A DNA stretch of 64,000 nucleotides from Neoechinorhynchus agilis. Its lineage: Eukaryota > Animalia > Acanthocephala. The stretch spans positions 4,690,784 to 4,754,783 of the forward strand of contig CM121341.1 of NCBI GenBank assembly GCA_051530055.1, read 5' to 3'. The notes under the pieces were generated by a model. The model saw only the letters and a program-made list of their open reading frames with translations. It did not search any database and had not been told where the DNA came from. Positions 19,791-60,569 of this stretch are shown here, one piece after another. The translations under genes were made by a program, and so were the position numbers. Each line of letters starts with the position of its first letter. The first letter of the stretch is position 1.

Positions 19791-20030
19791 AATGTATTGA
19801 AGAAACGAAGACAATTTAAAACTCATTGTTTATGTCCGGTATTATTGCTACCGATCGATAATAAACGAAGTGCCATACGATGCTCACAGTCGCACGTTCC
19901 TCGTAGAGTTCCATTGTCACAAGTTCTTGAGATTTCAAAGCCGAAATTTAAGGTGTTCCTCATCGATCGATAATGCGATAAAAATAGTCTTACATGTCAG
20001 AGCGATCATCGAAGTCATGCGGGGAATTTG

Positions 20031-21986: not shown

Positions 21987-22140
21987 GATTATATGAGTAA
22001 GTTGATCAATTAAATCTGGGATGATAAAGAGTAGAGCCCAGTTGGGAATGGGAGAGTTAAGGGATGATTTGCCTGGTAGTTTCCGAAGAAGCATGAGAAT
22101 ATCATACGTAGAAATCATTAGAGGTGAAGCTATAGAAGCT
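20700..22140 (-). mobile_element. Degenerate LINE (CR1/L2-like) ORF2 RT region
   Basis: LTHIINQSFKTGIF...LLPK...FRPISNL...SKILE...QFGYRPG, then GVLERTVLFPIPFNIFLTDL...LYAGD, corresponding to GVPQGSxLGP and YADD. Confidence 0.85.
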
Positions 22141-26925: not shown

Positions 26926-27250
26926 TCACGTGTTCACGCGACTTTCCTTTCGTTCTCCATTTTGGTTATTAAACTCGTCAATTTCGGAAACGAATTGAAT
27001 GTCAGAATTATGTTCAAGCGATTTCTCCCCGCTCATCATGAAGAAATTCAAATTTGACGATTTCACTACGATTGCCGTGAGTACTGGCGATTTGTTAAGG
27101 CTGCATTTCAGCGGCACTTCGAGTTTCACTCTCCTCTGATTATACTCCAATCGTTCTCCGGTCAGAGGAGATTTCCGCTGTCGTAATGTTTTGTGGATCG
27201 GTGACTGGAGCACAAGCCGCTTGCTGGCCCTGCAAGTTTATTGAATATCC
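26926..27250 (-). pseudogene. FoxO-like relic C: last coding repeat joined to a deleted C-terminal region
   Basis: 27181-27250 is a coding-type repeat. 27100-27180 matches copy B (KSHLTGERLENNQ). 26990-27100 matches copy A (STHGNLSKIVK...QHNSDIEF). Confidence 0.85.
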
Positions 27251-30200
27251 TTATTGTTCGTGTGCAACTTCATTGTTTACGTCATGTTCTGAATCAATGC
27301 GGCGATTTATTGTCGCAGAAAGATACGAGCGGTGTCACTTTATTGTTTTTCTGTAACTACAACACAATTTTCTTGCTTTGCCGTCAAGTGCATTGAATAT
27401 TCTTATTGTTCGTGTGCAACTTCATTGTTTACGTCATGTTCTGAATCAATGCGGCTATTTATTGTCGCAGAAAGATACGAGCGGTGTCACTTTATTGTTT
27501 TTCTGTAACTACAACACAATTTTCTTGCTTTGCCGTCAAGTGCATTTAATATTCTTATTGTTCGTGTGCAACTTCATTGTTTACGTCATGTTCTGAATCA
27601 ATGCGGCTATTTATTCCCGCAGATAGATACGAGCGGTGTCACTTTATTGTTTTGCGCTAACTAAAACACAATTTTCTTGCTTTGCCGTCAAGTGCATTGA
27701 ATATCCTTATTGTTCGTGTGCAACTTCATTGTTTACGTCATGTTCTGAATCAATGCGGCTATTTATTGTCGCAGATAGATACGAGCGGTGTCACTTTATT
27801 GTTTTTCTGTAACTACAACACAATTTTCTTTCTTTGCCGTCAAGTGCATTGAATATTCTTATTGTTCGTGTGCAACTTCATTGTTTACGTCATGTTCTGA
27901 ATCAATGCGGCGATTTATTGTCGCAGAAAGATACGAGCGGTGTCACTTTATTGTTTTTCTGTAACTACAACACAATTTTCTTGCTTTGCCGTCAAGTGCA
28001 TTTAATATTCTTATTGTTCGTGTGCAACTTCATTGTTTACGTCATGTTCTGAATCAATGCGGCTATTTATTCCCGCAGATAGATACGAGCGGTGTCACTT
28101 TATTGTTTTGCGCTAACTAAAACACAATTTTCTTGCTTTGCCGTCAAGTGCATTGAATATCCTTATTGTTCGTGTGCAACTTCATTGTTTACGTCATGTT
28201 CTGAATCAATGCGGCTATTTATTGTCGCAGATAGATACGGGCGGTGTCACTTTATTGTTTTTCTGTAACTACAACACAATTTTCTTTCATTGCCGTCAAG
28301 TGAATTGAATATTCTTATTGTTCGTGTGCAACTTCATTGTTTACGTCATGTTCTGAATCAATGCGGCTATTTATTCCCGCAGATAGATACGAGCGGTGTC
28401 ACTTTATTGTTTCTCTGTAACTACAACACAATTTTCTTGCTTTGCGGTCAAGTGCATTTAATATTCTTATTGTTTGTGGTCAACTTCATTGTTTACGTCA
28501 TGTTCTGAATCAATGCGGCGATTTATTGTCGCAGATAGATACGGGCGGTGTCACTTTATTGTTTCTCTGTAACTACAACACAATTTTCTTGCTTTGCGGT
28601 CAAGTGCATTTAATATTCTTATTGTTTGTGGTCAACTTCATTGTTTACGTCATGTTCTGAATCAATGCGGCTATTTATTCCCGCAGATAGATACGAGCGG
28701 TGTCACTTTATTGTTTTTCGCTAACTACAACACAATTTTCTTGCTTTGCCGTCAAGTGCATTGAATATCCTTATTGTTCGTGTGCAACTTCATTGTTTAC
28801 GTCATGTTCTGAATCAATGCGGCTATTTATTGTCGCAGAAAGATACGGGCGGTGTCACTTTATTGTTTTTCTGTAACTACAACACAATTTTCTTTCATTG
28901 CCGTCAAGTGAATTGAATATTCTTATTGTTCGTGTGCAACTTCATTGTTTACGTCATGTTCTGAATCAATGCGGCTATTTATTGTCGCAGATAGATACGA
29001 GCGGTGTCACTTTATTGTTTTTCTCTAACTACAACACAATTTTCTTGCTTTGCCGTCAAGTGCATTTAATATTCTTATTGTTCGTGTGCAACTTCATTGT
29101 TTACGTCATGTTCTGAATCAATGCGGCTATTTATTGTCGCAGATAGATACGGGCGGTGTCACTTTATTGTTTTTCTGTAACTACAACACAATTTTCTTGC
29201 TTTGCCGTCAAGTGCATTGAATATTCTTATTGTTCGTGTGCAACTTCATTGTTTGCGTCATGTTCTGAATCAATGCGGCTATTTATTCCCGCAGATAGAT
29301 ACGAGCGGTGTCACTTTATTGTTTCTCTGTAACTACAACACAATTTTCTTGCTTTGCGGTCAAGTGCATTTAATATTCTTATTGTTTGTTGCAACTTCAT
29401 TGTTTACGTCATGTTCTGAATCAATGCGGCTATTTATTCTCGCAGATAGATACGAGCGGTGTCACTTTATTGTTTCTCTGTAACTACAACACAATTTTCT
29501 TGCTTTGCGGTCAAGTGCATTTAATATTCTTATTGTTTGTGGTCAACTTCATTGTTTACGTCATGTTCTGAATCAATGCGGCGATTTATTGTCGCAGATA
29601 GATACGGGCGGTGTCACTTTATTGTTTCTCTGTAACTACAACACAATTTTCTTGCTTTGCCGTCAAGTGCATTTAATATTCTTATTGTTCGTGTTCAACT
29701 TCATTGTTTACGTCATGTTCTGAATCAATGCGGCGATTTATTGTCGCAGATAGATACGAGCGGTGTCACTTTATTGTTTCTCTGTAACTACAACACAATT
29801 TTCTTGCTTTGCGGTCAAGTGCATTTAATATTCTTATTGTTTGTGGTCAACTTCATTGTTTACGTCATGTTCTGAATCAATGCGGCTATTTATTCCCGCA
29901 GATAGATACGAGCGGTGTCACTTTATTGTTTTGCGCTAACTAAAACACAATTTTCTTGCTTTGCCGTCAAGTGCATTGAATATCCTTATTGTTCGTGTGC
30001 AACTTCATTGTTTACGTCATGTTCTGAATCAATGCGGCTATTTATTGTCGCAGAAAGATACGGGCGGTGTCACTTTATTGTTTTTCTGTAACTACAACAC
30101 AATTTTCTTGCTTTGCCGTCAAGTGCATTGAATATCCTTATTGTTCGTGTGCAACTTCATTGTTTACGTCATGTTCTGAATCAATGCGGCTATTTATTGT

Positions 30201-33200
30201 CGCAGAAAGATACGGGCGGTGTCACTTTATTGTTTTTCTGTAACTACAACACAATTTTCTTTCATTGCCGTCAAGTGCATTGAATATCCTTATTGTTCGT
30301 GTGCAACTTCATTGTTTACGTCATGTTCTGAATCAATGCGGCTATTTATTGTCGCAGAAAGATACGGGCGGTGTCACTTTATTGTTTTTCTGTAACTACA
30401 ACACAATTTTCTTTCATTGCCGTCAAGTGCATTGAATATTCTTATTGTTCGTGTGCAACTTCATTGTTTACGTCATGTTCTGAATCAATGCGGCGATTTA
30501 TTGTCGCAGATAGATACGGGCGGTGTCACTTTATTGTTTTTCTGTAACTACAACACAATTTTCTTGCTTTGCCGTCAAGTGCATTGAATATCCTTATTGT
30601 TCGTGTGCAACTTCATTGTTTACGTCATGTTCTGAATCAATGCGGCTATTTATTGTCGCAGAAAGATACGGGCGGTGTCACTTTATTGTTTTTCTGTAAC
30701 TACAACACAATTTTCTTTCATTGCCGTCAAGTGCATTGAATATTCTTATTGTTCGTGTGCAACTTCATTGTTTACGTCATGTTCTGAATCAATGCGGCGA
30801 TTTATTGTCGCAGAAAGATACGAGCGGTGTCACTTTATTGTTTTTCTGTAACTACAACACAATTTTCTTGCTTTGCCGTCAAGTGCATTTAATATTCTTA
30901 TTGTTCGTGTGCAACTTCATTGTTTACGTCATGTTCTGAATCAATGCGGCTATTTATTGTCGCAGAAAGATACGAGCGGTGTCACTTTATTGTTTTTATG
31001 TAACAACAACACAATTTTCTTGCTTTGCCGTCAATTGCATTTAAAATTCTTATTGTTCGTGTGCCACTTCATTGTTTACGTATGTTCTGAATCAATGCGG
31101 CTATTTATTCCCGCAGATAGATACGAGCGGTGTCACTTTATTGTTTTGCGCTAACTAAAACACAATTTTCTTGCTTTGCCGTCAAGTACATTGAATATCC
31201 TTATTGTTCGTGTGCAACTTCATTGTTTACGTCATGTTCTTAATCAATGCGGCTATTTATTCCCGCAGATAGATACGAGCGGTGTCACTTTATTGTTTTG
31301 CGCTAACTAAAACACAATTTTCTTGCTTTGCCGTCAAGTGCATTGAATATCCTTATTGTTCGTGTGCAACTTCATTGTTTACGTCATGTTCTGAATCAAT
31401 GCGGCTATTTATTGTCGCAGAAAGATACGGGCGGTGTCACTTTATTGTTTTTCTGTAACTACAACACAATTTTCTTTCATTGCCGTCAAGTGAATTGAAT
31501 ATTCTTATTGTTCGTGTGCAACTTCATTGTTTGCGTCATGTTCTGAATCAATGCGGCTATTTATTCCCGCAGATAGATACGAGCGGTGTCACTTTATTGT
31601 TTCTCTGTAACTACAACACAATTTTCTTGCTTTGCGGTCAAGTGCATTTAATATTCTTATTGTTTGTGGTCAACTTCATTGTTTACGTCATGTTCTGAAT
31701 CAATGCGGCGATTTATTGTCGCAGATAGATACGGGCGGTGTCACTTTATTGTTTCTCTGTAACTACAACACAATTTTCTTGCTTTGCCGTCAAGTGCATT
31801 GAATATTCTTATTGTTCGTGTGCAACTTCATTGTTTACGTCATGTTCTTAATCAATGCGGCTATTTATTCCCGCAGATAGATACGAGCGGTGTCACTTTA
31901 TTGTTTTTCGCTAACTAAAACACAATTTTCTTGCTTTGCCGTCAAGTGCATTGAATATCCTTATTGTTCGTGCGCAACTTCATTGTTTACGTCATGTTCT
32001 GAATCAATGCGGCTATTTATTGTCGCAGAAAGATACGGGCGGTGTCACTTTATTGTTTTTCTGTAACTACAACACAATTTTCTTTCATTGCCGTCAAGTG
32101 CATTGAATATTCTTATTGTTCGTGTGCAACTTCATTGTTTACGTCATGTTCTGAATCAATGCGGCTATTTATTGCCGCAGATAGATACGAGCGGTGTCAC
32201 TTTATTGTTTTTCGCTAACTACAACACAATTTTCTTGCTTTGCCGTCAAGTGCATTTAATATTCTTATTGTTCGTGTGCAACTTCATTGTTTACGTCATG
32301 TTCTGAATCAATGCGGCGATTTATTGTCGCAGAAAGATACGAGCGGTGTCACTTTATTGTTTCTCTGTAACTACAACACAATTTTCTTTCATTGCCGTCA
32401 AGTGCATTTAATATTCTTATTGTTTGTGGTCAACTTCATTGTTTACGTCATGTTCTGAATCAATGCGGCGATTTATTGTCGCAGAAAGATACGAGCGGTG
32501 TCACTTTATTGTTTTGCTGTAACTACAACACAATTTTTTTCATTGCCGTCAAGTGAATTGAATATTCTTATTGTTCGTGTGCAACTTCATTGTTTACGTC
32601 ATGTTCTGAATCAATGCGGCTATTTATTGTCGCAGATAGATACGAGCGGTGTCACTTTATTGTTTTTCTGTAACTACAACACAATTTTCTTTCATTGCCG
32701 TCAAGTGCATTTAATATTCTTATTGTTCGTGTGCAACTTCATTGTTTACGTCATGTTCTGAATCAATGCGGCGATTTATTGTCGCAGAAAGATACGAGCG
32801 GTGTCACTTTATTGTTTCTCTGTAACTACAACACAATTTTCTTTCATTGCCGTCAAGTGCATTTAATATTCTTATTGTTTGTGGTCAACTTCATTGTTTA
32901 CGTCATGTTCTGAATCAATGCGGCGATTTATTGTCGCAGATAGATACGGGCGGTGTCACTTTATTGTTTTTCTGTAACTACAACACAATTTTCTTTCATT
33001 GCCGTCAAGTGCATTGAATATTCTTATTGTTCGTGTGCAACTTCATTGTTTACGTCATGTTCTGAATCAATGCGGCTATTTATTCCCGCAGATAGATACG
33101 AGCGGTGTCACTTTATTGTTTTTCGCTAACTAAAACACAATTTTCTTGCTTTGCCGTCAAGTGCATTGAATATTCTTATTGTTCGTGTGCAACTTCATTG

Positions 33201-34737
33201 TTTACGTCATGTTCTGAATCAATGCGGCGATTTATTGTCGCAGAAAGATACGGGCGGTGTCACTTTATTGTTTTTCTGTAACTACAACACAATTTTCTTT
33301 CATTGCCGTCAAGTGCATTTAATATTCTTATTGTTCGTGTGCAACTTCATTGTTTACGTCATGTTCTGAATCAATGCGGCTATTTATTCCCGCAGATAGA
33401 TACGAGCGGTGTCACTTTATTGTTTTTCGCTAACTACAACACAATTTTCTTGCTTTGCCGTCAAGTGCATTGAATATTCTTATTGTTCGTGTGCAACTTC
33501 ATTGTTTACGTCATGTTCTGAATCAATGCGGCGATTTATTGTCGCAGAAAGATACGAGCGGTGTCACTTTATTGTTTTTCTGTAACTACAACACAATTTT
33601 CTTTCATTGCCGTAAAGTGCATTGAATATTCTTATTGTTCGTGTGCAACTTCATTGTTTACGTCATGTTCTGAATCAATGCGGCTATTTATTGTCGCAGA
33701 TAGATACGAGCGGTGTCACTTTATTGTTTTTCGCTAACTACAACACAATTTTCTTGCTTTGCCGTCGATTGCATTTAATATTCTTATTGTTCGTGTGCAA
33801 CTTCATTGTTTACGTCATGTTCTGAATCAATGCGGCTATTTATTGTCGCAGAAAGATACGGGCAGTGTCACTTTATTGTTTTTCGCTAACTACAACACAA
33901 TTTTCTTTCATTGCCGTCAAGTGAATTGAATATTTTTATTGTTCGTGTGCAACTTCATTGTTTACGTCATGTTCTGAATCAATGCGGCGATTTATTGTCG
34001 CAGATAGATACGAGCGGTGTCACTTTATTGTTTTTCGCTAACTACAACACAATTTTCTTACTTTGCCGTCAAGTGCATTTAATATTCTTATTGTTCGTGT
34101 GCAACTTCATTGTTTACGTCATGTTCTGAATCAATGCGGCTATTTATTGTCGCAGAAAGATACGGGCGGTGTCACTTTATTGTTTTTCGCTAACTACAAC
34201 ACAATTTTCTATCATTGCCGTCAAGTGCATTTAATATTCTTATTGTTCGTGCGCAACTTCATTGTTTACGTCATGTTCTGAATCAATGCGGCTATTTATT
34301 GTCGCAGATAGATACGAGCGGTGTCACTTTATTGTTTTTCGCTAACTACAACACAATTTTCTATCATTGCCGTCAAGTGCATTGAATATTCTTATTGTTT
34401 GTGGTCTACTTCATTGTTTACGTCATGTTCTGAATCAATGCGGCGATTTATTTTCGCAGATAGATACGAGCGGTGTCACTTTATTGTTTTTCTGTAACTA
34501 CAACACAATTTTCTATCATTGCCGTAAAGTGCATTGAATATTCTTATTGTTCGTGTACAACTTCATTGTTTACGTCATGTTCTGAATCAATGCGGCTATT
34601 TATTGTCGCAGAAAGATACGAGCAGTGTCACTTTATTGTTTTTCTGTAACTAAAACACAATTTTCTTGCTTTGCCGTCAAGTGCATTGAATATTCTTATT
34701 GTTTGTGGTCAACTTCATTGTTTACGTCATGTTCTGA
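27251..34737. repeat. 152-bp satellite, block 1 (about 49 units)
   Basis: Unit TTGCCGTCAAGTGCATTGAATATTCTTATTGTTCGTGTGCAACTTCATTGTTTACGTCATGTTCTGAATCAATGCGGCTATTTATTGTCGCAGATAGATACGAGCGGTGTCACTTTATTGTTTTTCGCTAACTACAACACAATTTTCTTGCT. The period is also visible in ORF-track spacings of 152, 304 and 456 bp. Confidence 0.99.
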
Positions 34738-34830
34738 TGATGTGCCATAGTTTTGTTCATCGGCTTTAAATCTGCTCCTTTTCTTTTTTCTTCTGTGACT
34801 GGTGAACAAGTTGCTTATTGTGCCGACACT
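34738..34830 (-). pseudogene. Short relic resembling the last degenerate repeats of copy A
   Basis: TCTGTGACTGGTGAACAAGTTGCTT resembles TCTGTGACTGGAACACCAGTTGCTT near 13797. AAATCTGCTC resembles the sequence near 13658. Confidence 0.5.
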
Positions 34831-35109
34831 GAAATGAATGTCTGTATGGTTGTAGCGGAAGGTTGATGTTCGCGACAAGTACGCATTTGAATTGTAATTT
34901 ATCTACTCAATTTTTAGATCGTATCTTAAAGGGGGAAAATGCGTTTTAAAGATTCGAATGAAGTTTATACAAATAGAGATAAGAAACATCAAAAAGCTAA
35001 ATATTTTAAACTTCAATTTGCAAAATTTATAGTATGAATCTTTAGTCTTGCACAGTAGACATGCAACATTGTATTGGTTCGCCAGCGGAAAAATAACAAT
35101 GATTTTTAT

Positions 35110-38100
35110 TTAGTCGTCGCTTAATATCTGGTTTAACAAATTATCTTCATCGGAGTCTTCATCGCTGTCAAATTGACTCTCCTCTGGATTTCCGTTTGTA
35201 TTATTAGTCGCGTCATTTTCCTGGTCCTCCTCGGTGTTATCGTTTTTCCTCGGACTGTCAGCGATCCCCAACGCTGCTCGTATCGCGTCCTCTAGTTGAA
35301 GAGTTTCAGCATCCTTTGGTTTTCGTATTACCTCCGCCGGTGGTTCGGATGGTGGTAATTCCTCACGAACGGATTGGGGTGTCATCTCGCCACCTTCAGA
35401 ATAATCTTCTTCTTCGGATTGTTCTCCTTCTGGAGTGCAAGGGCGAAAAAGTATGTTTTCTAGGAACATGTTAACAGTTTGATTAGCATCAACGCTCATA
35501 TAGCTTTCGGCCGGACTGGTAGCCGAAGCGCTTGACGATAGATTAAGTTCCTCTATCGATCGAGGATATTCTAAAATGTACTGCGCGAGCGTTGCCTCGT
35601 CGAACTGAGATGATCCGTTAAATTGATCCTTTGTTTCAACTCCAACTGGAATGGGTATATGTTGCTCAGATTCAAATTGTTCATTGATCTTGTGATATTG
35701 TTGGTGGTGTTCAGTTTGGGGCTCCTGCTGGTTTATCGGTCCAAAGTTAACATCGGGAGAAAAATTGAAGTTATCACGATCGTTGTCTGGCGCTTCAAAT
35801 GAAAAATAGTGCTCGTGTTCGACGTTTGGCCGACGATATCTATCTAAATCTTCATTGGCAATCTCATATCTATCAGCCGACAATGTATTAAATATAGTCC
35901 CCCTTTGCTCATCGTGTAGATTTACGGTGTCATCCAGCTGCAGTTCAGCGGCACTTCGAGTTTCATTCTCTGCTCTAATCTGATTATTTTCTAATCGTTC
36001 TCCGGTCAGATGAGATTTCTGCTCGTTTAGCAACCGGAAATTTTCTTGGTAATCCTCATCATTAAGCCCAACTTTATCCGAAAAATTACGCTGGTTGCTT
36101 TCGTGTGCCCCCTTGATTTCAGCTTCAATATTTGGTTCAGGACACATCTTTTGCTTTTTAGGTGGATGACATTCCGAAACGTCGTGTGTCCTTTTAGTGC
36201 TTTGTTTATCGGAAAAAATTTGGTGGCTCCGTATTGATTTTTGTTCACACATCTGCTCATTCGACTTCGCCGTTTCATCAGTTACCTTATTCGAGGACAG
36301 ATCTGCTCCTTGATAGTTTTGTACGCCCGTCATATTTTCTCTTTGCGTACAATTAATTTTTTGCATTTTGCTTAATTCCTTATAATTATCGGTGCCTTCA
36401 TATTGCCTTTTCATTGCTGTTATTGAATTTTGATTGAATCGTTTTTGGCCACTCGCCGATCGATCATCGCCATCCTTATTGATCATTGAAGCACAGTTCA
36501 TTGAATATCCTTGCTGTTCGCGTGGAACTTCATTCTTAACCTCAGTGTTCTGATTTGGCGCCGCTATTTCGTGTTGTTGATAAAAATGCGCCGTCGTAAT
36601 GTTTTGTGGATCGGTGACTGGAGCATAAGCCGCTTGCTGGCCTTGCAAGTGCATTGAATATCCTTGCTGCTCGCGTTGATCTTCATTGTTAACCTCAGTG
36701 TTCAGATTTTGCGCCGCTATTTCGGTTTGTTGATAGAAACCTACCGTCGCCATGTTTTGTGGTTCGCTGATTGGAGCACAAGCCGCTTGCTGGCCCTGCA
36801 AGTTTATTGAATATCCTTGCTGTTCGCGTGGATCTTCATTGTTTACCCCAGTGTTCGGATTTGGCGCCGTTATTTCGGTTTGTTGATAGAAACCCGCTGC
36901 CGTCATGTTTTGTGGATTGGTTACTGGAGCACGAGCCGCTTGCTGATCCTGCAAGTACATTGAATATCCTTGTTGTTCGCGTTGAACTTCATTGTTTACC
37001 CAAGTGTTCGGATTTGGAGCCGCTATTTCGGTTTCTTGATAGAAACCCACCGTCGCCATGTTTTGTGGTTCGGTGATTGGAGCGCAAGCCGCTTGCTGAT
37101 CCTGCAAGTGCATTGAATATCCTTGCTGTTCGCGTGGATCTTCATTGTTAACCTCAGTGTTCGGATGAGGTGCCGCAATTTCGTATTGTTGGTGGAAACC
37201 CACCGTCGCCATGTTTTGTAGTTCGGTGATTGGAGCACAAGCCGCTTGCTGATCCTGCAAGTGCATTGAATATCCTTGTTGTTCGCGTGGATCTTCATTG
37301 TTAACCTCAGTGTTCGGATTTGGCGCCGTTATTTCGGTTTGTTGATAGAAACCCGCTGCCGTCATGTTTTGTGGATTGGTTACTGGAGCACAAGCCGCTT
37401 GCTGATCCTGCAAGTGCATTGAATATCCTTGCTGTTCGCGTGGAACTTCATTGTTTACCCCAGTGTTCGGATTTGGCGCCGCTATTTCGGTTTGTTGATA
37501 GAAACCCACCGTCGCCATGTTTTGTGGTTCGCTGATTGGAGCACAAGCCGCTTGCTGATCCTGCAAGTGCATTGAATATCCTTGTTGTTCGCGTTGATCT
37601 TCATTGTTAACCTCAGTGTTCTGATTTGGCGCCGCTATTTCGTGTTGTTGATAGAAACCCACCGTCGCCATGTTTTGTGGTTCAGTGATTGGAGCACAAG
37701 CCGCTTGCTCATCCTGCAAGTGCATTGAATATCCTTGTTGTTCGCGTTGATCTTCATTGTTAACCTCAGTGTTCTGATTTGGCGCCGCTATTTCGTGTTG
37801 TTGATAGAAACCCACCGTCGCCATGTTTTGTGGTTCAGTGATTGGAGCACAAGCCGCTTGCTCATCCTGCAAGTGCATTGAATATCCTTGTTGTTCGCGT
37901 TGATCTTCATTGTTAACCTCAGTGTTCTGATTTGGCGCCGCTATTTCGTGTTGTTGATAGAAACCCACCGTCGCCATGTTTTGTGGTTCAGTGATTGGAG
38001 CACAAGCCGCTTGCTCATCCTGCAAGTGCATTGAATATCCTTGTTGTTCGCGTTGATCTTCATTGTTAACCTCAGTGTTCTGATTTGGCGCCGCTATTTC

Positions 38101-41721: not shown

Positions 41722-41930
41722 ATTGTTTTCAAGAATTTGGAGCTTATAATGGTTTGAAAGAGATAAAAGAAGATTTCAACCGTTTGTGAGAGTTTCTAAA
41801 GGATTAAAATACGCTCATCTTTGGTCGTTTTGACTAATGTATTCAGGTGATGTAGCAAACAGTTTTTGGATAAACTATTTACCATTCAAACTCCATATTT
41901 GTCAATAACTCTGCGCTTTCAGCCCCAATA
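41722..41930 (-). promoter_or_regulatory. Conserved upstream block of copy B
   Basis: Homologous to 19572-19790. CAGGTG 41844-41849, GCAAACA 41855-41861, TATTTAC 41876-41882. Confidence 0.5.
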
Positions 41931-42024
41931 GTACACTAAGTTTTGTCGTTGTTTTCAAAACGCCAATAAAATTCAAAACATAAACCGATTTTAGATATTA
42001 CTATCGAGTCGCTGTATTGTATTA

Positions 42025-49900: not shown

Positions 49901-52900
49901 TTTATTGTTTTTCGCGGACTACAACACAATTTTCTATCATTGCCGTCAAGTGCATTGAATATTCTTATTGTTCGTGTGCAACTTCATTGTTTACGTCATG
50001 TTCTGAATCAATGCGGCTATTTATTGTCGCAGATAGATACGAGCGGTGTCACTTTATTGTTTTTCGCTAACTACAACACAATTTTCTTGCTTTGCCGTCA
50101 AGTGCATTTAATATTCTTATTGTTCGTGTGCAACTTCATTGTTTACGTCATGTTCTGAATCAATGCGGCGATTTATTGTCGCAGATAGATACGAGCGGTG
50201 TCACTTTATTGTTTTTCGCTGACTACAACACAATTTTCTTGCTTTGCCGTCAAGTGCATTTAATATTCTTATTGTTCGTGTGCAACTTCATTGTTTACGT
50301 CATGTTCTGAATCAATGCGGCGATTTATTGTCGCAGATAGATACGAGCGGTGTCACTTTATTGTTTTTCGCGGACTACAACACAATTTTCTTGCTTTGCC
50401 GTCAAGTGCATTTAATATTCTTATTGTTCGTGTGCAACTTCATTGTTTACGTCATGTTCTGAATCAATGCGGCTATTTATTGTCGCAGATAGATACGAGC
50501 GGTGTCACTTTTGTTTTTCGCTAACTACAACACAATTTTCTTGCTTTGCCGTCAAGTGCATTTAATATTCTTATTGTTCGTGTGCAACTTCATTGTTTAC
50601 GTCATGTTCTGAATCAATGCGGCTATTTATTGTCGCAGAAAGATACGAGCGGTGTCACTTTATTGTTTTTCTGTAACTACAACACAATTTTCTTGCTTTG
50701 CCGTCAAGTGCATTGAATATTCTTATTGTTCGTGTGCAACTTCATTGTTTACGTCATGTTCTGAATCAATGCGGCTATTTATTGTCGCAGATAGATACGA
50801 GCGGTGTCACTTTATTGTTTTTCGCTAACTACAACACAATTTTCTTGCTTTGCCGTCAAGTGCATTTAATATTCTTATTGTTCGTGTGCAACTTCATTGT
50901 TTACGTCATGTTCTGAATCAATGCGGCTATTTATTGTCGCAGAAAGATACGAGCGGTGTCACTTTATTGTTTTTCTGTAACTACAACACAATTTTCTATC
51001 ATTGCCGTAAAGTGCATTGAATATTCTTATTGTTCGTGTGCAACTTCATTGTTTACGTCATGTTCTGAATCAATGCGGCGATTTATTGTCGCAGATAGAT
51101 ACGAGCGGTGTCACTTTATTGTTTTTCGCGGACTACAATACAATTTTCTTGCTTTGCCGTCGAGTGCATTTAATATTCTTATTGTTCGTGTGCAACTTCA
51201 TTGTTTACGTCATGTTCTGAATCAATGCGGCGATTTATTGTCGCAGATAGATACGAGCGGTGTCACTTTATTGTTTTTCGCGGACTACAATACAATTTTC
51301 TTGCTTTGCCGTCAAGTGCATTGAATATTCTTATTGTTCGTGTGCAACTTCATTGTTTACGTCATGTTCTGAATCAATGCGGCGATTTATTGTCGCAGAA
51401 AGATACGAGCGGTGTCACTTTATTGTTTTTCGCGGACTACAACACAATTTTCTTGCTTTGCCGTCAAGTGCATTTAATATTCTTATTGTTCGTGTGCAAC
51501 TTCATTGTTTACGTCATGTTCTGAATCAATGCGGCGATTTATTGTCGCAGAAAGATACGAGCGGTGTCACTTTATTGGTTTTCTGTAACTACAACACAAT
51601 TTTCTATCATTGCCGTAAAGTGCATTGAATATTCTTATTGTTCGTGTGCAACTTCATTGTTTACGTCACGTTCTGAATCAATGCGGCTATTTATTGTCGC
51701 AGATAGATACGGGCGGTGTCACTTTATTGTTTTTCGCGGACTACAATACAATTTTCTTGCTTTGCCGTCATGTGCATTGAATATTCTTATTGTTCGTGTG
51801 CAACTTCATTGTTTACGTCATGTTCTGAATCAATGCGGCGATTTATTGTCGCAGATAGATACGAGCGGTGTCACTTTATTGTTTTTCGCTAACTACAACA
51901 CAATTTTCTTGCTTTGCCGTCAAGTGCATTGAATATTCTTATTGTTCTTGTGCAACTTCATTGTTTACGTCATGTTCTGAATCAATGCGGCGATTTATTG
52001 TCGCAGAAAGATACGAGCGGTGTCACTTTATTGTTTTTCGCGGACTACAACACAATTTTCTTGCTTTGCCGTCAAATGCATTGAATATTCTTATTGTTCG
52101 TGTGCAACTTCATTGTTTACGTCATGTTCTGAATCAATGCGGCTATTTATTGTCGCAGATAGATACGAGCGGTGTCACTTTATTGTTTTTCGCTAACTAC
52201 AACACAATTTTCTTGCTTTGCCGTCAAGTGCATTTAATATTCTTATTGTTCGTGTGCAACTTCATTGTTTACGTCATGTTCTGAATCAATGCGGCGATTT
52301 ATTGTCGCAGATAGATACGAGCGGTGTCACTTTTGTTTTTCTGTAACTACAACACAATTTTCTTGCTTTGCCGTCAATTGCATTTAAAATTCTTATTGTT
52401 CGTGTGCCACTTCATTGTTTACGTCATGTTCTGAATCAATGCGGCTTGTTATTGTCGCAGAAAGATACGAGCGGTGTCACTTTATTGTTTTTCTGTAACT
52501 ACAACACAATTTTCTATCATTGCCGTAAAGTGCATTGAATATTCTTATTGTTCGTGTGCAACTTCATTGTTTACGTCATGTTCTGAATCAATGCGGCGAT
52601 TTATTGTCGCAGATAGATACGAGCGGTGTCACTTTATTGTTTTTCGCTAACTACAACACAATTTTCTTGCTTTGCCGTCGATTGCATTTAATATTCTTAT
52701 TGTTCGTGTGCAACTTCATTGTTTACGTCATGTTCTGAATCAATGCGGCGATTTATTGTCGCAGATAGATACGAGCGGTGTCACTTTATTGTTTTTCGCT
52801 AACTACAACACAATTTTCTTGCTTTGTGGTCAAGTGCATTTAATATTCTAATTGTTCGTGTGCAACTTCATTGTTTACGTCACGTTCTGAATCAATGCGG

Positions 52901-55900
52901 CGATTTATTGTCGCAGATAGATACGAGCGGTTTAACTTTATTATTTTTCGCGGACTACAACACAATTTTCTATCATTGCCGTATAGTGCATTGAATATTC
53001 TTATTGTTCGTGTGCAACTTCATTGTTTACGTCATGTTCTGAATCAATGCGGCTATTTATTGTCGCAGATAGATACGAGCGGTGTCACTTTATTGTTTTT
53101 CGCTAACTACAACACAATTTTCTTGCTTTGCCGTCGATTGCATTTAATATTCTTATTGTTCGTGTGCAACTTCATTGTTTACGTCATGTTCTGAATCAAT
53201 GCGGCGATTTATTGTCGCAGATAGATACGAGCGGTGTCACTTTATTGTTTTTCGCGGACTACAATACAATTTTCTATCATTGCCGTAAAGTGCATTTAAT
53301 ATTCTTATTGTTCGTGTGCAACTTCATTGTTTACGTCATGTTCTGAATCAATGCGGCTATTTATTGTCGCAGATAGATACGAGCGGTGTCACTTTATTGT
53401 TTTTCGCTAACTACAACACAATTTTCTTGCTTTGCCGTCAAGTGCATTTAATATTCTATTGTTCGTGTGCACTCATTGTTTACGTCACGTTCTGAATCAA
53501 TGCGGCGATTTATTGTCGCAGATAGATACGAGCGGTGTCACTTTATTGTTTTTCGCGGACTACAACACAATTTTCTTGCTTTGCCGTCAAGTGCATTGAA
53601 TATTCTTATTGTTCGTGTGCAACTTCATTGTTTACGTCATGTTCTGAATCAATGCGGCTATTTATTGTCGCAGATAGATACGAGCGGTGTCACTTTATTG
53701 TTTTTCGCTAACTACAACACAATTTTCTTGCTTTGCCGTCAAGTGCATTGAATATTCTTATTGTTCGTGTGCAACTTCATTGTTTACGTCATGTTCTGAA
53801 TCAATGCGGCTTGTTATTGTCGCAGAAAGATACGAGCGGTGTCACTTTATTGTTTTTCGCTAACTACAACACAATTTTCTTGCTTTGCCGTCAAGTGCAT
53901 TTAATATTCTTATTGTTCGTGTGCAACTTCATTGTTTACGTCATGTTCTGAATCAATGCGGCGATTTATTGTCGCAGATAGATACGAGCGGTGTCACTTT
54001 ATAGTTTTTCGCTAACTACAACACAATTTTCTTGCTTTGCCGTCAAGTGCATTTAATATTCTAATTGTTCGTGTGCAACTTCATTGTTTACGTCACGTTC
54101 TGAATCAATGCGGCGATTTATTGTCGCAGATAAATACGAGCGGTGTCACTTTATTGTTTTTCGCGGACTACAATACAATTTTCTTGCTTTGCCGTAAAGT
54201 GCATTTAATATTCTTATTGTTCGTGCTCAACTTCATTGTTTACGTCATGTTCTGAATCAATGCGGCTATTTATTATCGCAGATAGATACGAGCGGTGTCG
54301 TTTTATTGTTTTTCTGTAACTACAACACAATTTTCTATCATTGCCGTAAAGTGCATTGAATATTCTTATTGTTCGTGTGCATCTTCATTGTTTACGTCAT
54401 GATCTGAATCAATGAGGCTATTTGTTCCCGCAGATAGATACGAGCGGTGTCACTTTATTGTTTTTCGCTAACTACAACACAATTTTCTTGCTTTGCAGTC
54501 GAGTGCATTTTATATTCTTATTGTTCGTTTGCAACTTCATTGTTTACGCCATGTTCTGAATCAATGCTGCGATTCATTGTCGCAGAAAGATACGAGCGGT
54601 GCCACTTTATTGGTTTTCTGTAACTACAACACAATTTTCTTGCTTTGTCGTCAAGTGAGTTTAATATTCTTATTGTTCGTGTGCAACTTCATCGTTTACG
54701 TCATGTTTTTTCTAATGCGGCATTTATTCCCGCAGAAAGATACGAGCGGTGTCACTTTATTGTTTTTCTGTAACTACAACACAATTTTCTTCTTTGCCGT
54801 CAAGTGCATTTAATATTCTTATTGTTCGTGTGCAACTTCATTGTTTACGTCATGTTCTGAATCAATGCGGCTATTTATTGTCGCAGAAAGATACGAGCGG
54901 TGTCACTTTATTGTTTTTCTGTAACTACAACACAATTTTCTTTCATTGCCGTCAAGTGCATTGAATATTCTTATTGTTCGTGTGCAACTTCATTGTTTAC
55001 GTCATGTTCTGAATCAATGCGGCTATTTATTGTCGCAGATAGATACGAGCGGTGTCACTTTATTGTTTTTCGCGGACTACAATACAATTTTCTTGCTTTG
55101 CCGTAATGTGCATTGAATATTCTTATTGTTCGTGTGCAACTTCATTGCTTACGTCATGTTCTGAATCAATGCGGCGATTTATTGTCGCAGATAGATACGA
55201 GCGGTGTCACTTTATTGTTTTTCGCTAACTACAACACAATTTTCTTGCTTTGTCGTCGATTGCATTTAATATTCTTATTGTTCGTGTGCAACTTGATTGT
55301 TTACGTCATGTTCTGAATCAATGCGGCGATTTATTGTCGCAGATAGATACGAGCGGTGTCACTTTATTGTTTTTCGCGGACTACAATACAATTTTCTATC
55401 ATTGCCGTAAAGTGCATTTAATATTCTTATTGTTCGTGTGCAACTTCATTGTTTACGTCATGTTCTGAATCAATGCGGCTATTTATTGTCGCAGATAGAT
55501 ACGAGCGGTGTCACTTTATTGTTTTTCGCTAACTACAACACAATTTTCTTGCTTTGCCGTCGATTGCATTTAATATTCTTATTGTTCGTGTGCAACTTCA
55601 TTGTTTACGTCATGTTCTGAATCAATGCGGCTATTTATTGTCGCAGATAGATACGAGCGGTGTCACTTTATTGTTTTTCGCTAACTACAACACAATTTTC
55701 TTGCTTTGCCGTCGATTGCATTTAATATTCTTATTGTTCGTGTGCAACTTCATTGTTTACGTCATGTTCTGAATCAATGCGGCGATTTATTGTCGCAGAT
55801 AGATACGAGCGGTGTCACTTTATTGTTTTTCGCGGACTACAATACAATTTTCTGTTTGCCGTCATGCATTTAAATTCTTATTGTTCGTGTGCAACTTCAT

Positions 55901-58900
55901 TGTTTACGTCATGTTCTGAATCAATGCGGCTTTTTATTGTCGCAGAAAGATACGAGCGGTGTCACTTTATTGTTTTTCGCTAACTACAACACAATTTTCT
56001 TGCTTTGCCGTCAATTGCATTTAATATTCTTATTGTTCGTGTGCAACTTCATTGTTTACGTCATGTTCTGAATCAATGCGGCGATTTATTGTCGCAGATA
56101 GATACGAGCGGTGTCACTTTATTGTTTTTCGCGGACTACAATACAATTTTCTTTCATTGCCGTCAAGTGCATTTAATATTCTTATTGTTCGTGTGCAACT
56201 TCATTGTTTACGTCATGTTCTGAATCAATGCGGCTATTTATTGTCGCAGATAGATACGAGCGGTGTCACTTTATTGTTTTTCGCTAACTACAACACAATT
56301 TTCTTGCTTTGCCGTCAAGTGCATTTAATATTCTTATTGTTCGTGTGCAACTTCATTGTTTACGTCATGTTCTGAATCAATGCGGCGATTTATTGTCGCA
56401 GATAGATACGAGCGGTGTCACTTTATTGTTTTTCGCTAACTACAACACAATTTTCTTGCTTTGCCGTCAATTGCATTTAAAATTCTTATTGTTCGTGTGC
56501 CACTTCATTGTTTACGTCATGTTCTGAATCAATGCGGCTATTTATTGTCGCAGAAAGATACGAGCGGTGTCACTTTATTGTTTTTCGCTGACTACAACAC
56601 AATTTTCTATCATTGCCGTAAAGTGCATTTAATATTCTTATTGTTCGTGTGCAACTTCATTGTTTACGTCATGTTCTGAATCAATGCGGCGATTTATTGT
56701 CGCAGATAGATACGAGCGGTGTCACTTTATTGTTTTTCGCTAACTACAACACAATTTTCTTGCTTTGCCGTCGATTGCATTTAATATTCTTATTGTTCGT
56801 GTGCAACTTCATTGTTTACGTCATGTTCTGAATCAATGCGGCGATTTATTGTCGCAGATAGATACGAGCGGTGTCACTTTATTGTTTTTCGCGGACTACA
56901 ATACAATTTTCTATCATTGCCGTAAAGTGCATTGAATATTCTTATTGTTCGTGTGCAACTTCATTGTTTACGTCATGTTCTGAATCAATGCGGCTATTTA
57001 TTGTCGCAGATAGATACGAGCGGTGTCACTTTATTGTTTTTCGCTAACTACAACACAATTTTCTTGCTTTGCCGTCAAGTGCATTTAATATTCTTATTGT
57101 TCGTGTGCAACTTCATTGTTTACGTCATGTTCTGAATCAATGCGGCTATTTATTCCCGCAGATAGATACGAGCGGTGTCACTTTATTGTTTTTCGCTGAC
57201 TACAATACAATTTTCTTGCTTTGCCGTCAAGTGCATTTAATATTCTTATTGTTCGTGTGCAACTTCATTGTTTACGTCATGTTCTGAATCAATGCGGCGA
57301 TTTATTGTCGCAGATAGATACGAGCGGTGTCACTTTATTGTTTTTCGCGGACTACAATAATTCTCTTGCTTTGCCGTCAAGTGCATTGAATATTCTTATT
57401 GTTCGTGTGCAACTTCATTGTTTACGTCATGTTCTGAATCAATGCGGCGATTTATTGTCGCAGAAAGATACGAGCGGTGTCACTTTATTGTTTTTCTGTA
57501 ACTACAACACAATTTTCTATCATTGCCGTAAAGTGCATTGAATATTCTTATTGTTCGTGTGCAACTTCATTGTTTACGTCACGTTCTGAATCAATGCGGC
57601 GATTTATTGTCGCAGATAGATACGGGCGGTGTCACTTTATTGTTTTTCGCGGACTACAATACAATTTTCTTGCTTTGCCGTCATGTGCATTGAATATTCT
57701 TATTGTTCGTGTGCAACTTCATTGTTTACGTCATGTTCTGAATCAATGCGGCGATTTATTGTCGCAGATAGATACGAGCGGTGTCACTTTATTGTTTTTC
57801 GCTAACTACAACACAATTTTCTTGCTTTGCCGTCAAGTGCATTGAATATTCTTATTGTTCTTGTGCAACTTCATTGTTTACGTCATGTTCTGAATCAATG
57901 CGGCGATTTATTGTCGCAGAAAGATACGAGCGGTTTCACTTTATTGTTTTTCGCGGACTACAATACAATTTTCTTGCTTTGCCGTCAAATGCATTGAATA
58001 TTCTTATTGTTCGTGTGCAACTTCATTGTTTACGTCATGTTCTGAATCAATGCGGCTATTTATTGTCGCAGATAGATACGAGCGGTGTCACTTTATTGTT
58101 TTTCGCTAACTACAACACAATTTTCTTGCTTTGCCGTCAAGTGCATTTAATATTCTTATTGTTCGTGTGCAACTTCATTGTTTACGTCATGTTCTGAATC
58201 AATGCGGCGATTTATTGTCGCAGATAGATGCGAGCGGTGTCACTTTTGTTTTTCTGTAACTACAACACAATTTTCTTGCTTTGCCGTCAATTGCATTTAA
58301 AATTCTTATTGTTCGTGTGCCACTTCATTGTTTACGTCATGTTCTGAATCAATGCGGCTTGTTATTGTCGCAGAAAGATACGAGCGGTGTCACTTTATTG
58401 TTTTTCTGTAACTACAACACAATTTTCTATCATTGCCGTAAAGTGCATTGAATATTCTTATTGTTCGTGTGCAACTTCATTGTTTACGTCATGTTCTGAA
58501 TCAATGCGGCTATTTATTGTCGCAGATAGATACGAGCGGTGTCACTTTATTGTTTTTCGCTAACTACAACACAATTTTCTTGCTTTGCCGTCGATTGCAT
58601 TTAATATTCTTATTGTTCGTGTGCAACTTCATTGTTTACGTCATGTTCTGAATCAATGCGGCGATTTATTGTCGCAGATAGATACGAGCGGTGTCACTTT
58701 ATTGTTTTTCGCTAACTACAACACAATTTTCTTGCTTTGCCGTCAAGTGCATTGAATATTCTTATTGTTCGTGTGCAACTTCATTGTTTACGTCATGTTC
58801 TGAATCAATGCGGCGATTTATTGTCGCAGATAGATACGAGCGGTGTCACTTTATTGTTTTTCGCTAACTACAACACAATTTTCTTGCTTTGCCGTCAAGT

Positions 58901-60569
58901 GCATTGAATATTCTTATTGTTCGTGTGCAACTTCATTGTTTACGTCATGTTCTGAATCAATGCGGCTATTTATTGTCGCAGATAGATACGAGCGGTGTCA
59001 CTTTATTGTTTTTCGCTAACTACAACACAATTTTCTTGCTTTGCCGTCAAGTGCATTTAATATTCTTATTGTTCGTGTGCAACTTCATTGTTTACGTCAT
59101 GTTCTGAATCAATGCGGCGATTTATTGTCGCAGATAGATACGAGCGGTGTCACTTTATTGTTTTTCGCGGACTACAACACAATTTTCTTGCTTTGCCGTC
59201 AAGTGCATTGAATATTCTTATTGTTCGTGTGCAACTTCATTGTTTACGTCATGTTCTGAATCAATGCGGCTATTTATTGTCGCAGATAGATACGAGCGGT
59301 GTCACTTTATTGTTTTTCGCTAACTACAACACAATTTTCTTGCTTTGCCGTCAAGTGCATTTAATATTCTTATTGTTCGTGCAACTTCATTGTTTACGTC
59401 ATGTTCTGAATCAATGCGGCGATTTATTGTCGCAGATAGATACGAGCGGTGTCACTATTGTTTTTCTGTAACTACAACACAATTTTCTATCATTGCCGTA
59501 AAGTGCATTGAATATTCTTATTGTTCGTTTGCAACTTCATTGTTTACGTCATGTTCTGAATCAATGCGGCTTGTTATTGTCGCAGAAAGATACGAGCGGT
59601 GTCACTTTATTGTTTTTCTGTAACTATAACACAATTTTCTATCATTGCCGTAAAGTGCATTGAATATTCTTATTGTTCGTGCTCAACTTCATTGTTTACG
59701 TCACGTTCTGAATCAATGCGGCGATTTATTGTCGCAGATAGATACGAGCGGTGTCACTTTATTGTTTTTCGCGGAATACAATACAATTTTCTTGCTTTGC
59801 CGTCGATTGCATTTAATATTCTTATTGTTCGTGTGCAACATCATTGTTTACGTCATGTTCTGAATCAATGCGGCGATTTATTGTCGCAGATAGATACGAG
59901 CGGTGTCACTTTATTGTTTTTCGCGGACTACAATACAATTCTCTTGCTTTGCCGTCAAGTGCATTGAATATTCTTATTGTTCGTGTGCAACTTCATTGTT
60001 TACGTCATGTTCTGAATCAATGCGGCGATTTATTGTCGCAGAAAGATGAGCGGTGTCACTTTATTGTTCGCGGACTACAACACAATTTTCTTGCTTTGCC
60101 GTCGAGATCATTTAATATTCTTATTGTTCGTGTGCAACTTCATTGTTTACGTCATGTTCTGAATCAATGCGGCGATTTATTGTCGCAGAAAGATACGAGC
60201 GGTGTCACTTTATTGGTTTTCTGTAACTACAACACAATTTTCTATCATTGCCGTAAAGTGCATTGAATATTCTTATTGTTCGTGTGCAACTTCATTGTTT
60301 ACGTCACGTTCTGAATCAATGCGGCGATTTATTGTCGCAGAATAGATACGGGCGGTGTCACTTTATTGTTTTTCGCGGACTACAATACAATTTTCTTGCT
60401 TTGCCGTCATGTGCATTGAATATTCTTATTGTTCGTGTGCAACTTCATTGTTTACGTCATGTTCTGAATCAATGCGGCGATTTATTGTCGCAGATAGATA
60501 CGAGCGGTGTCACTTTATTGTTTTTCGCTAACTACAACACAATTTTCTTGCTTTGCCGTCAAGTGCATT
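43958..60569. repeat. 152-bp satellite, block 2 (about 109 units)
   Basis: Same unit and orientation as block 1, with block-enriched variants such as CGCGGACTAC, CGTAAAGTG and CTATCATTG. Confidence 0.99.

Follow-up and report, generated by a model that had tools for sequence, protein, structure and literature searches.

In the D4Z4/DUX4 macrosatellite, transcription-factor coding sequence and tandem array are one locus, with a whole open reading frame (ORF) in each unit. The forkhead domain of FoxP3 engages TnG microsatellites, and FoxM1 is reported to prefer tandem TAAACA (PMC2910063). In the ZNF274/SETDB1 system, ZNF274 occupies the 3′ coding tandem repeats of KRAB-ZNF genes, members of its own family (PMC2999557), and anchors KRAB-ZNF clusters near nucleoli (PMC11397430). 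The CENP-B box, for which binding has been demonstrated, is preserved in unrelated satellites, primate alpha and mouse centromeric (PMC5615363), and satellites can be seeded by earlier repeats, such as rDNA spacers and transposable elements, and are then homogenised in tandem (PMC5615363).

The locus described here lies in a 64,000-nucleotide stretch of Neoechinorhynchus agilis chromosome CM121341.1, assembly GCA_051530055.1 (the window). It contains a 24-kb satellite that is very likely a decayed, re-amplified copy of the 51-aa coding repeat of a FoxO-like gene family, the forkhead-type 8-mer in its units being an inherited Val-Asn-Asn passenger. Unlike those of D4Z4/DUX4, its units are decayed 51-codon fragments, and an intact gene stands between the arrays. 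The seed of this satellite would be the coding minisatellite of a neighbouring transcription-factor gene, a source absent from the list given in the review (PMC5615363). Like the CENP-B box, the 8-mer is a short motif at a fixed unit position of a tandem satellite, but it is a candidate site only, its presence is accounted for by descent from coding sequence, and its conservation does not exceed that of its flanks. As with the ZNF274-anchored clusters, the locus is linked to rDNA, bordering 28S sequence; ZNF274, however, is documented by a ChIP signal over functional coding exons of many genes, whereas the sites here are predicted and stand in a non-coding satellite derived from the repeat of one gene. 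The microsatellites or close sites engaged by FoxP3 and FoxM1 allow multimerisation, in contrast to the present arrangement of one site per unit, 152 bp apart.

TRF identified two arrays with a period of 152 bp, at 27233-34737 and 43957-60569, and two with a period of 153 bp, at 13833-18525 and 36495-40899. The 152-bp arrays are as follows:

27233..34737, minus strand: satellite L, 49 units of 152 bp, oriented as the genes; exact 8-mer in 47/49 (TRF, unit walk)
43957..60569, minus strand: satellite R, 109 units of 152 bp, same family as satellite L; exact 8-mer in 107/109 (TRF, unit walk)

Unit identity was 94.5% inside each array and 93.8% between them, and both arrays carry variant haplotypes and small indels in common; L and R form one family, in a pattern consistent with recent homogenisation. 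With 158 non-coding units of 152 bp arranged head to tail over a long array, ~94.5% pairwise identity and concerted evolution, they have the properties of satellite DNA.

Nearly every unit carries the 8-mer TTGTTTAC, or GTAAACAA on the opposite strand, which is identical to the published FoxO/DAF-16 binding element (DBE). The element was reportedly published by Furuyama et al. in 2000, and the title of PDB entry 3CO6 provides a second source for this identification. The whole window contains 200 copies of TTGTTTAC against 4.8 ± 2.1 expected, with no excess outside the repeats within the window. Every array copy lies on the plus strand; read in the sense direction of the minus-strand genes, the 8-mer is GTAAACAA. 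The initial annotation had reported the motif in nearly all of the ~158 satellite units; a register-preserving walk found it exact in 154 of 158 (49 + 109 units), always at unit columns 41–48. The four exceptional units read TTGTTTGC at 29249 and 31527, TCGTTTAC at 54692 and TTGCTTAC at 55145; the exceptions had been described as few, at positions that were right or nearby, but only two of the four had been named.

The same annotation suggested a functional self-targeting. On this reading, the FoxO-like proteins would bind the ~200 same-strand DBEs of the satellite and coding arrays, and the array would titrate the factor, provide a platform for autoregulation or nucleate assembly of the Q/N repeats. 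We consider this unlikely. Most FOX proteins bind GTAAACA, the generic forkhead motif (PMC8034652); the element is thus not peculiar to the encoded factor, which speaks against such a function.

The window contains two paralogous genes:

35110..41721, minus strand: gene B, an intact, intron-free ORF of 2203 aa
41452..41694, minus strand: gene B forkhead domain, aa 10-90; recognition helix NYVRHKLS; Pfam E = 3.5e-13
36502..40938, minus strand: gene B coding repeat array, 29 units of 153 bp (51 aa), covering aa 262-1740
34738..35109, minus strand: gene B 3′ flank, ~170 nt in common with the gene A 3′ flank
11974..19571, minus strand: gene A, paralogue of gene B; four ORFs through three frame changes
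13833..18760, minus strand: gene A repeat array, ~32 coding-type units of 153/147/152 bp; 25 exact GTAAACAA sites

The gene B ORF begins with MPRQNAWG, preceded by in-frame stops, and encodes a FoxO-like forkhead domain at the N-terminus, a linker rich in Q and N, 29 in-phase 51-aa repeats and an acidic C-terminal tail. Its repeat array holds 18 exact GTAAACAA sites, and pN/pS between the units is 0.68. The canonical site recurs in ~158 units flanking this gene on both sides, and an old, diverged repeat unit at 34738-34830 leads in phase into satellite L. The FoxO-like genes had been described as embedded in the array, which is true of gene B, between L and R, but not of gene A, which lies 7.6 kb outside.

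Gene A shares 88% amino acid identity with gene B in the N-terminal region. Its first lesion, in repeat unit 2, is a 22-bp deletion plus a diverged stretch. Introns were rejected as the source of the frame changes: the deletion lacks an acceptor AG, making genuine damage more likely. Gene A is probably a pseudogene or the source of a truncated 324-aa product, and its broken state weighs against a self-targeting function. A T9 run is found at one of the lesions.

Aligned with the gene B coding consensus, the satellite is identical at 111 of 154 positions (72%). In the homologous frame it reads ..DVNNEVAHEQ*EY*MHL.., against ..EVNNEVPREQQGYSMHL.. in the coding repeat. Stop codons interrupt all satellite frames homologous to the coding repeat, with 4–5 stops per unit, the period of 152 bp is not a multiple of 3, and a database query with a satellite ORF returned no match. 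Remains of a third paralogue were recognised at the array edge:

26974..27280, minus strand: third paralogue remains, 3′ edge of satellite L; tblastn E = 2e-7 to 7e-6

Here the last unit of satellite L is a satellite/coding hybrid (VNNEVAHEQ*GYSINLQGQQAACAPVTDPQNI), followed by a remnant full of stops and frameshifts that is collinear with the C-terminal tails encoded by both genes. The hybrid unit and the decayed C-terminal tail together indicate that the satellite occupies the repeat slot of a dead paralogue. A candidate forkhead N-terminus of this paralogue above satellite R was rejected, with tblastn matches only at E >= 0.06 and nothing credible by blastn.

The opposite direction, in which an older non-coding satellite was captured by the FoxO-like genes and became their coding repeat, would account equally for the homology of the two repeat types, as identity alone gives no polarity, and other gene-adjacent satellites occur in the genome. 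We regard it as highly unlikely: the stops and the out-of-frame period speak against it, the placement of the satellite between a coding-type unit and a paralogue's decayed C-terminal tail is the signature of a dead gene, the coding type is common to both genes and the remnant, and a database query with the forkhead domain plus one repeat unit matched only the window's own ORFs. At the level of sequence, the alignments demonstrate the homology of satellite and coding repeat, its direction and the codon identity of the motif.

Exceedingly unlikely is an assembly artefact, with arrays or gene/satellite junctions mis-assembled, collapsed or expanded. Although long tandem arrays are error-prone to assemble, and the frame changes of gene A could partly be sequencing errors, as at its T9 run, the structured variant haplotypes and small indels recur in both arrays, the junctions are unique sequence with interpretable remnants, and the 6.6-kb gene B ORF stays open through 29 repeats.

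On the sense strand, GTAAACAA corresponds to the codons GTA-AAC-AA(T), the Val-Asn-Asn of the coding repeat. The exact 8-mer occurs in 42 of 60 coding units (40 with GTAAACAAT, one with GTAAACAAC and one with GTAAACAGT) and is missing in the other 18 (30%), of which 8 carry GTTAACAAT, 6 carry ATAAACAAT and 4 have other changes. In the eight GTTAACAAT units, a synonymous GTA>GTT change has destroyed the site; the natural synonymous variant of TTGTTTAC is TTGTTAAC. Loss of the site from nearly a third of the coding units, in eight of them by synonymous change, argues against self-targeting, while the low probability of an exact match by coincidence is in its favour. For a single founder unit, the probability of the exact 8-mer arising by chance was 0.5% in codon shuffles of the coding consensus and 2.2% in dinucleotide shuffles of the satellite consensus, and an earlier rough estimate of ~1% was of the right order of magnitude. 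Since the satellite is homologous to the coding repeat, the 200 copies go back to a single founder event that tandem amplification has multiplied; it is this one event, and not 158 independent ones, that makes up the excess over chance.

The motif had been placed where satellite and coding repeat are most alike, and its window indeed ranks 2nd of 152; the longest identical run of the two consensus sequences is GTAAACAATGAAGTT, with the motif at one end. Only 12 of 153 coding 8-mers (8%) survive exactly in the satellite consensus, GTAAACAA among them. The divergence is bimodal, with 10% of positions changed in a 61-nt motif block and 37% in the rest (Fisher P = 0.0003). A function in self-targeting is favoured both by this unusual conservation of the motif block and by the persistence of the 8-mer through 28% divergence that spared so few others. 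GC-to-AT decay was rejected as a full explanation of the bimodal pattern and accounts for it only in part, because AT sites also differ, being changed at 0/35 positions in the motif block vs 11/45 elsewhere (P = 0.002). Gene conversion, a mosaic founder or constraint could each yield the better-conserved block.

The description of the genes as FoxO-like was confirmed by several lines of evidence. Pfam PF00250 scores 49.9 bits for gene B and 66.9 for gene A (cutoff 27), and the best PDB sequence matches of both are FOXO1/3/4 (FOXO3/4/1 for gene B), exceeding other FOX classes by ~5 orders of magnitude in E-value. The AlphaFold2 model of gene B contains H1–H3 plus beta strands, with pLDDT >90 for aa 11–70; its top Foldseek matches are FOX domains and FOXO1–DNA complexes, and it superposes on the FOXO1–DBE complex with a TM of 0.86. 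FOXO1/3/4 and Brugia DAF-16a are the best matches by sequence and structure; two other top forkhead matches, P0010 and P0003, were uninformative. Both genes resemble FoxO/DAF-16 in the R-x-NAWG start, in a gapless alignment with FOXO1/3/4 across the extended, FoxO-length H2–H3 loop, and in the Asn, His and Ser of helix 3 that contact bases and backbone. FOXO1 makes major-groove contacts through Asn211, His215 and Ser218 (PMC8034652), which are retained in NYVRHKLS (gene B) and NSVRHTLS (gene A), as compared with NSIRHNLS in FOXO1.

Unlike FoxO/DAF-16, the gene B protein carries a 1479-aa Q/N-rich repeat array, and in both genes the FOXO1 wing-1 backbone contacts Arg225 and Ser235 are replaced, by Leu/Met in gene B and His/Met in gene A. 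The AKT/14-3-3 sites were found in neither form: the sequence aligned with RRRAxS after wing 2 is RLRNRDE for gene B and RLRKRDE for gene A, and the N-terminal RxRxxT is absent because only 4 residues precede the domain. The domains are ~35% identical to those of canonical FoxO proteins, and no orthologue was found among 1.84 billion representative proteins, the best matches being 32–44% identical and none with E <1e-30. The forkhead domains are, as judged from these comparisons, a divergent FoxO derivative, not a canonical orthologue.

Binding of these domains to the array is physically plausible, since the base-contacting Asn, His and Ser are kept. The retained helix 3 and a predicted fold resembling DBE-bound FOXO1 are points for self-targeting, as are the repeat-binding precedents of the CENP-B box (PMC5615363), FoxP3 on TnG and ZNF274 on ZNF coding repeats (PMC2999557). 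The replaced wing-1 contacts count against it, and the low identity to canonical FoxO domains makes the specificity uncertain.

The per-position check across all units that had been proposed initially went against extra constraint, as the 8-mer is no more invariant than its flanks or typical windows. The motif columns contain 4 variant cells, and 14 of 152 8-column windows are equally or more invariant, with the motif window ranking 12–22 of 152. Rare variants in the motif numbered 4 vs 7.4 expected (Poisson P = 0.14), diversity did not differ between the motif-bearing third of the unit and the remainder (P = 0.66), and the most invariant windows lie around AATCAATG, away from the motif. The greater conservation that sets a CENP-B-type box apart from the rest of its unit is therefore not seen in this satellite. 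A 39-column polymorphism-free block around the motif is not compelling, with P = 0.05 for 20 independent columns vs 0.46 for 11 clusters. Median column identity is ~99%, and the test, in which no excess conservation of the 8-mer was observed, has low power because the units are ~95% alike. The near-invariance of the 8-mer is attributed to the youth and homogenisation of the array rather than to selection on the site; this absence of excess invariance speaks against self-targeting, a finding that was in addition picked post hoc.

Two further features flank satellite R:

42022..43956, minus strand: piece of a decayed retroelement, upstream of gene B; 98.5% identity with 20028-21986, which lies upstream of gene A
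62282..64000, minus strand: partial 28S rRNA gene or pseudogene, separated from satellite R by 1.7 kb; Rfam RF02543, 844 bits

The gene A-side retroelement copy runs on into an RT-like ORF (21597-22118), and the gene B-side copy ends exactly at the start of satellite R. A decayed ORF encoding two C2H2-like fingers lies in the interval 60570-62281, which is a candidate fragment of an rDNA-targeting retroelement. A database query with a GNAT ORF matched only itself. P0037, another divergent FoxO-like gene, is located on the same chromosome at ~9.89 Mb, 500 bp from a 136-bp satellite. Kinship of the 136-bp and 152-bp satellites was rejected (best E 0.56). No TTGTTTAC was found in the satellite beside P0037, and a site-free satellite adjoining a paralogue again argues against self-targeting.

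Overall, the descriptive core of the initial reading holds, namely FoxO-type genes and site-bearing flanking units, but its functional part, whether sink, condensate seed or heterochromatin platform, gains nothing; the tests run give no support to an evolved self-targeting function, and binding itself is a prediction. The likely explanation is instead descent of the satellite from the coding repeat. The window contains a small tandem cluster of lineage-specific FoxO-derived genes, each encoding a forkhead domain at the N-terminus and, after it, a giant Q/N-rich minisatellite of 153 bp (51 aa) per unit. The coding array of at least one dead paralogue would have gone out of frame (152 bp) and gained 4–5 stops per unit, to be re-amplified and homogenised by unequal exchange into the ~24 kb of satellite now flanking gene B. 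The 8-mer, presumably already in the founder unit, would have been copied along with it as a passenger that any nuclear forkhead protein might bind if the chromatin is open. We infer that the amplification proceeded by unequal crossing-over and that the forkhead site is neutral.

The locus thus appears to offer a clean, datable satellite birth with junction remnants that are still readable, in which a coding minisatellite, part of a transcription-factor gene, went out of frame in a paralogue that had died and then expanded again as a non-coding satellite. Seeding of a satellite by a coding repeat is rarely documented, reviews naming transposable elements and rDNA spacers. A perfect transcription-factor site may be mass-produced without selection on the site, which calls for caution with motif-enrichment claims in repeats. 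It is improbable, on the present evidence, that the gene-spawned 24-kb satellite is bound by the surviving Q/N-rich FoxO-like protein beside the rDNA, as a self-made sink, autoregulatory platform or nuclear body; if such binding does occur, titration and condensation of a transcription factor by repeats derived from its own gene could be studied here in a natural setting.

Two paralogous minus-strand FoxO-like genes, A and B, lie in the window, and one of them stands amid arrays carrying a canonical forkhead/FoxO binding site (DBE; TTGTTTAC on the plus strand, GTAAACAA in the gene sense). The initial annotation had placed both genes within the motif array; this holds for gene B, between satellites L and R, and not for gene A. 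The chromosome (CM121341.1, GCA_051530055.1) measures 19.4 Mb, and Tandem Repeats Finder detected four large arrays in the window.

Features of the window
49 to 2846-2914: Ty3/gypsy-type LTR retrotransposon pol fragment (protease, RT, RNase H, integrase; two ORFs)
19571 to 11974, minus strand: gene A, four ORFs with three frame changes between them
13833-18525 and 36495-40899: 153-bp tandem arrays (Tandem Repeats Finder)
20028-21986 and 42022-43957: decayed retroelement fragment, two copies, upstream of genes A and B, respectively
23954-24502, plus strand: GNAT-family acetyltransferase ORF, 182 aa, clear Pfam matches
27233-34737 and 43957-60569: 152-bp tandem arrays, satellites L and R (Tandem Repeats Finder)
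41721 to 35110, minus strand: gene B, one uninterrupted ORF of 2203 codons
62282-64000, minus strand: partial eukaryotic 28S rRNA gene, truncated by the right end of the window (Rfam RF02543, 844 bits)

The motif TTGTTTAC occurs 200 times in the window, against 4.8 expected. An in-register walk of the 152-bp arrays yielded 49 + 109 = 158 units, with an exact copy in columns 41-48 of the unit in 154 of them, in agreement with the initial count of about 158 units, nearly all bearing the motif. The exceptions reported near 29250 and 55145 were located at 29249 (TTGTTTGC) and 55145 (TTGCTTAC), and two more were found at 31527 (TTGTTTGC) and 54692 (TCGTTTAC). The coding arrays contribute 25 + 18 further exact copies, and every copy has the same orientation.

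The FoxO-like identity first proposed for the genes was borne out. Both N-termini, 88% identical over 275 aa, are forkhead domains (Pfam PF00250) whose top solved-structure matches are FOXO3, FOXO4 and FOXO1 (E-values 1e-14 to 1e-16), the remaining FOX classes being about five orders of magnitude weaker; no alignment gaps occur across the R-x-NAWG start or the long, FoxO-specific loop that precedes helix 3. Residues 1-110 of gene B, modelled with AlphaFold2 (pLDDT >90 over residues 11-70), have a FOXO1-like predicted fold and superimpose on the FOXO1-DBE DNA complex with a target-normalised TM of 0.86 and an RMSD of 2.0 Å. In FOXO1, helix 3 enters the major groove, where Asn211 and His215 touch bases and Ser218 touches the phosphate backbone (PMC8034652). 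The equivalents of all three are kept in genes A and B; those of Arg225 and Ser235, which touch the backbone from wing 1, are replaced. The predicted proteins are remote from canonical FoxOs in several respects: identity to canonical domains is ~35%, the ORF starts four residues ahead of the domain with in-frame stops upstream, and neither AKT/14-3-3 site is present. No match below 1e-30 was found among 1.84 billion representative proteins. Downstream of the domain comes a Q/N-rich linker, followed in gene B by 29 perfectly phased 51-aa repeats, with Q+N making up 29% of the repeats and a pN/pS of 0.68 among units.

Alignment of the 152-bp satellite consensus with the 153-bp coding consensus gave matches at 111 of 154 positions. 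In the homologous frame the satellite has ..DVNNEVAHEQ*EY*MHL.. opposite ..EVNNEVPREQQGYSMHL.. in the coding repeat; it derives from that repeat, with a broken frame and many stops. The polarity of this descent is settled at the lower edge of satellite L. There, the last unit is a satellite/coding-type hybrid (VNNEVAHEQ*GYSINLQGQQAACAPVTDPQNI), and beyond it lies a stop- and frameshift-bearing remnant, collinear with both genes' C-terminal tails (tblastn E = 2e-7 to 7e-6), so the satellite occupies the former repeat-array place of a third, dead paralogue. Arrays L and R are 93.8% identical to each other, as compared to 94.5% inside each, and share variant haplotypes; they form a single young, homogenised family flanking gene B. 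The L end (34731-34737) and R start (43957-43963) have nearly equal unit phase (columns ~54-60), with TTCTGA at both junctions. One array may have received the 9.2-kb piece with gene B by insertion or duplication; against this, sequence on the L side stays in phase, in the form of an old and diverged unit.

In gene A, the first lesion falls in the second repeat unit, where 22 bp are deleted and a further stretch has diverged. Two of its units measure 152 bp rather than 153, and several measure 147 bp (two codons lost in frame); atypical lengths occur at 14150-14309, 17317-17476 and 18440-18600. Since frame changes fall at the 152-bp units, gene A may be starting along the same path as the satellite.

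The two decayed retroelement copies are 98.5% identical, as compared to only 92% between the adjacent gene 5′ parts, for which recent gene conversion, independent insertion or fast gene evolution are possible explanations. The copy upstream of gene A runs on into an RT-like ORF (21597-22118), and that upstream of gene B is truncated exactly at the satellite R start. Beside the pol fragment, two short tandem duplications (3800-4625, 326 bp x 2.5; 2999-3264, 141 bp x 1.9) may represent LTR or internal repeats. The GNAT ORF, between gene A and satellite L, matched only itself in a search of 5.8 billion proteins and is therefore an orphan-like gene. The 28S part, 1.7 kb past satellite R, diverges from the conserved 28S core directly after ...GTAACTATGACT, near the insertion place of 28S-specific retroelements. 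The intervening 1.7 kb (60570-62281) holds a decayed ORF with two C2H2-like fingers (MECPECNATFHGSNRTKILKEHFMLEHG..CPAC). Together these may represent an rDNA copy, or a pseudogene, into which such an element has inserted; the gene cluster would then lie at an rDNA border.

In the coding repeats, sense-strand GTAAACAA reads GTA-AAC-AA(T), Val-Asn-Asn within ..N-x-[DEG]-V-N-N... Its variants across 60 coding units indicate no DNA-level protection in these older, more diverged arrays.

Codons at the site in 60 coding units
GTAAACAAT: 40 units, site intact
GTAAACAAC: 1 unit, site intact
GTAAACAGT: 1 unit, site intact (Val-Asn-Ser)
GTTAACAAT: 8 units, site destroyed by synonymous change
ATAAACAAT: 6 units, exact 8-mer lost
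Other changes: 4 units, exact 8-mer lost

Within the satellite, no test showed special conservation of the 8-mer. The expectation that it would stand out from the rest of the unit held against the unit mean (0.997 vs 0.962), a mean lowered by ~20 polymorphic, subfamily-marking columns (median column ~0.99); it did not hold window by window, as 14 of 152 windows have as few variant cells as the four in the motif columns, or fewer. Rare variants at the motif numbered 4 against 7.4 expected (Poisson P = 0.14), and invariance peaks away from it, around AATCAATG (columns 56-64). A 39-column block that contains the motif and is free of polymorphism gave P = 0.05 to 0.46, according to the treatment of clustered columns, and does not stand out convincingly; diversity in the third of the unit that bears the motif was no different from that in the remainder (P = 0.66).

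The initial annotation had proposed a self-targeting system, with the FoxO-like factor recruited to an array of its own predicted element. An evolved system of this kind gained support from none of the tests run, and we consider it improbable; three results keep the functional idea from outright dismissal. An exact DBE arises in one founder unit in 0.5% (codon) or 2.2% (dinucleotide) of shuffles, as compared to 1-5% for the 7-mer core and 24-47% for the generic RYAAAYA motif. Only 12 of 153 coding 8-mers are intact in the satellite consensus, GTAAACAA among them, at the end of the longest identical run. Finally, satellite-coding divergence is bimodal: the 61-nt block holding the motif differs by 10% and the rest by 37% (P = 0.0003), for which GC-to-AT decay accounts in part. 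The remainder could be due to a mosaic founder, to gene conversion by the coding arrays or to constraint acting on the whole block, but none of these singles out the 8-mer. Moreover, the finding was picked after the fact, and GTAAACA is a generic motif of most FOX proteins rather than a private site of the encoded factor. The sole other FoxO-like gene examined, the divergent P0037 (253 aa, one ~50-bp intron, 41% identity; L002 1-5498 and 6001-6812 with adjoining satellite, ~9.89 Mb on the same chromosome), lies 500 bp from a satellite of 136-bp units (at least 40 copies) that shows no relation to the 152-bp family and lacks TTGTTTAC; gene-adjacent satellites thus occur elsewhere in this genome.

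Physical binding of the arrays by forkhead proteins is plausible, given the helix-3 contacts kept. The best-supported mechanism is passive: the dead paralogue's array would have been re-amplified as satellite, with coding-minisatellite codons copied about 158 times. In mechanism, the locus has no demonstrable counterpart among the systems with which we compared it, namely the CENP-B box, ZNF274 bound to ZNF coding repeats, satellites that arose from rDNA spacers or from transposable elements, and FoxP3 bound to microsatellites. Its distinctive trait is the seed, the coding repeat of a neighbouring transcription-factor gene.
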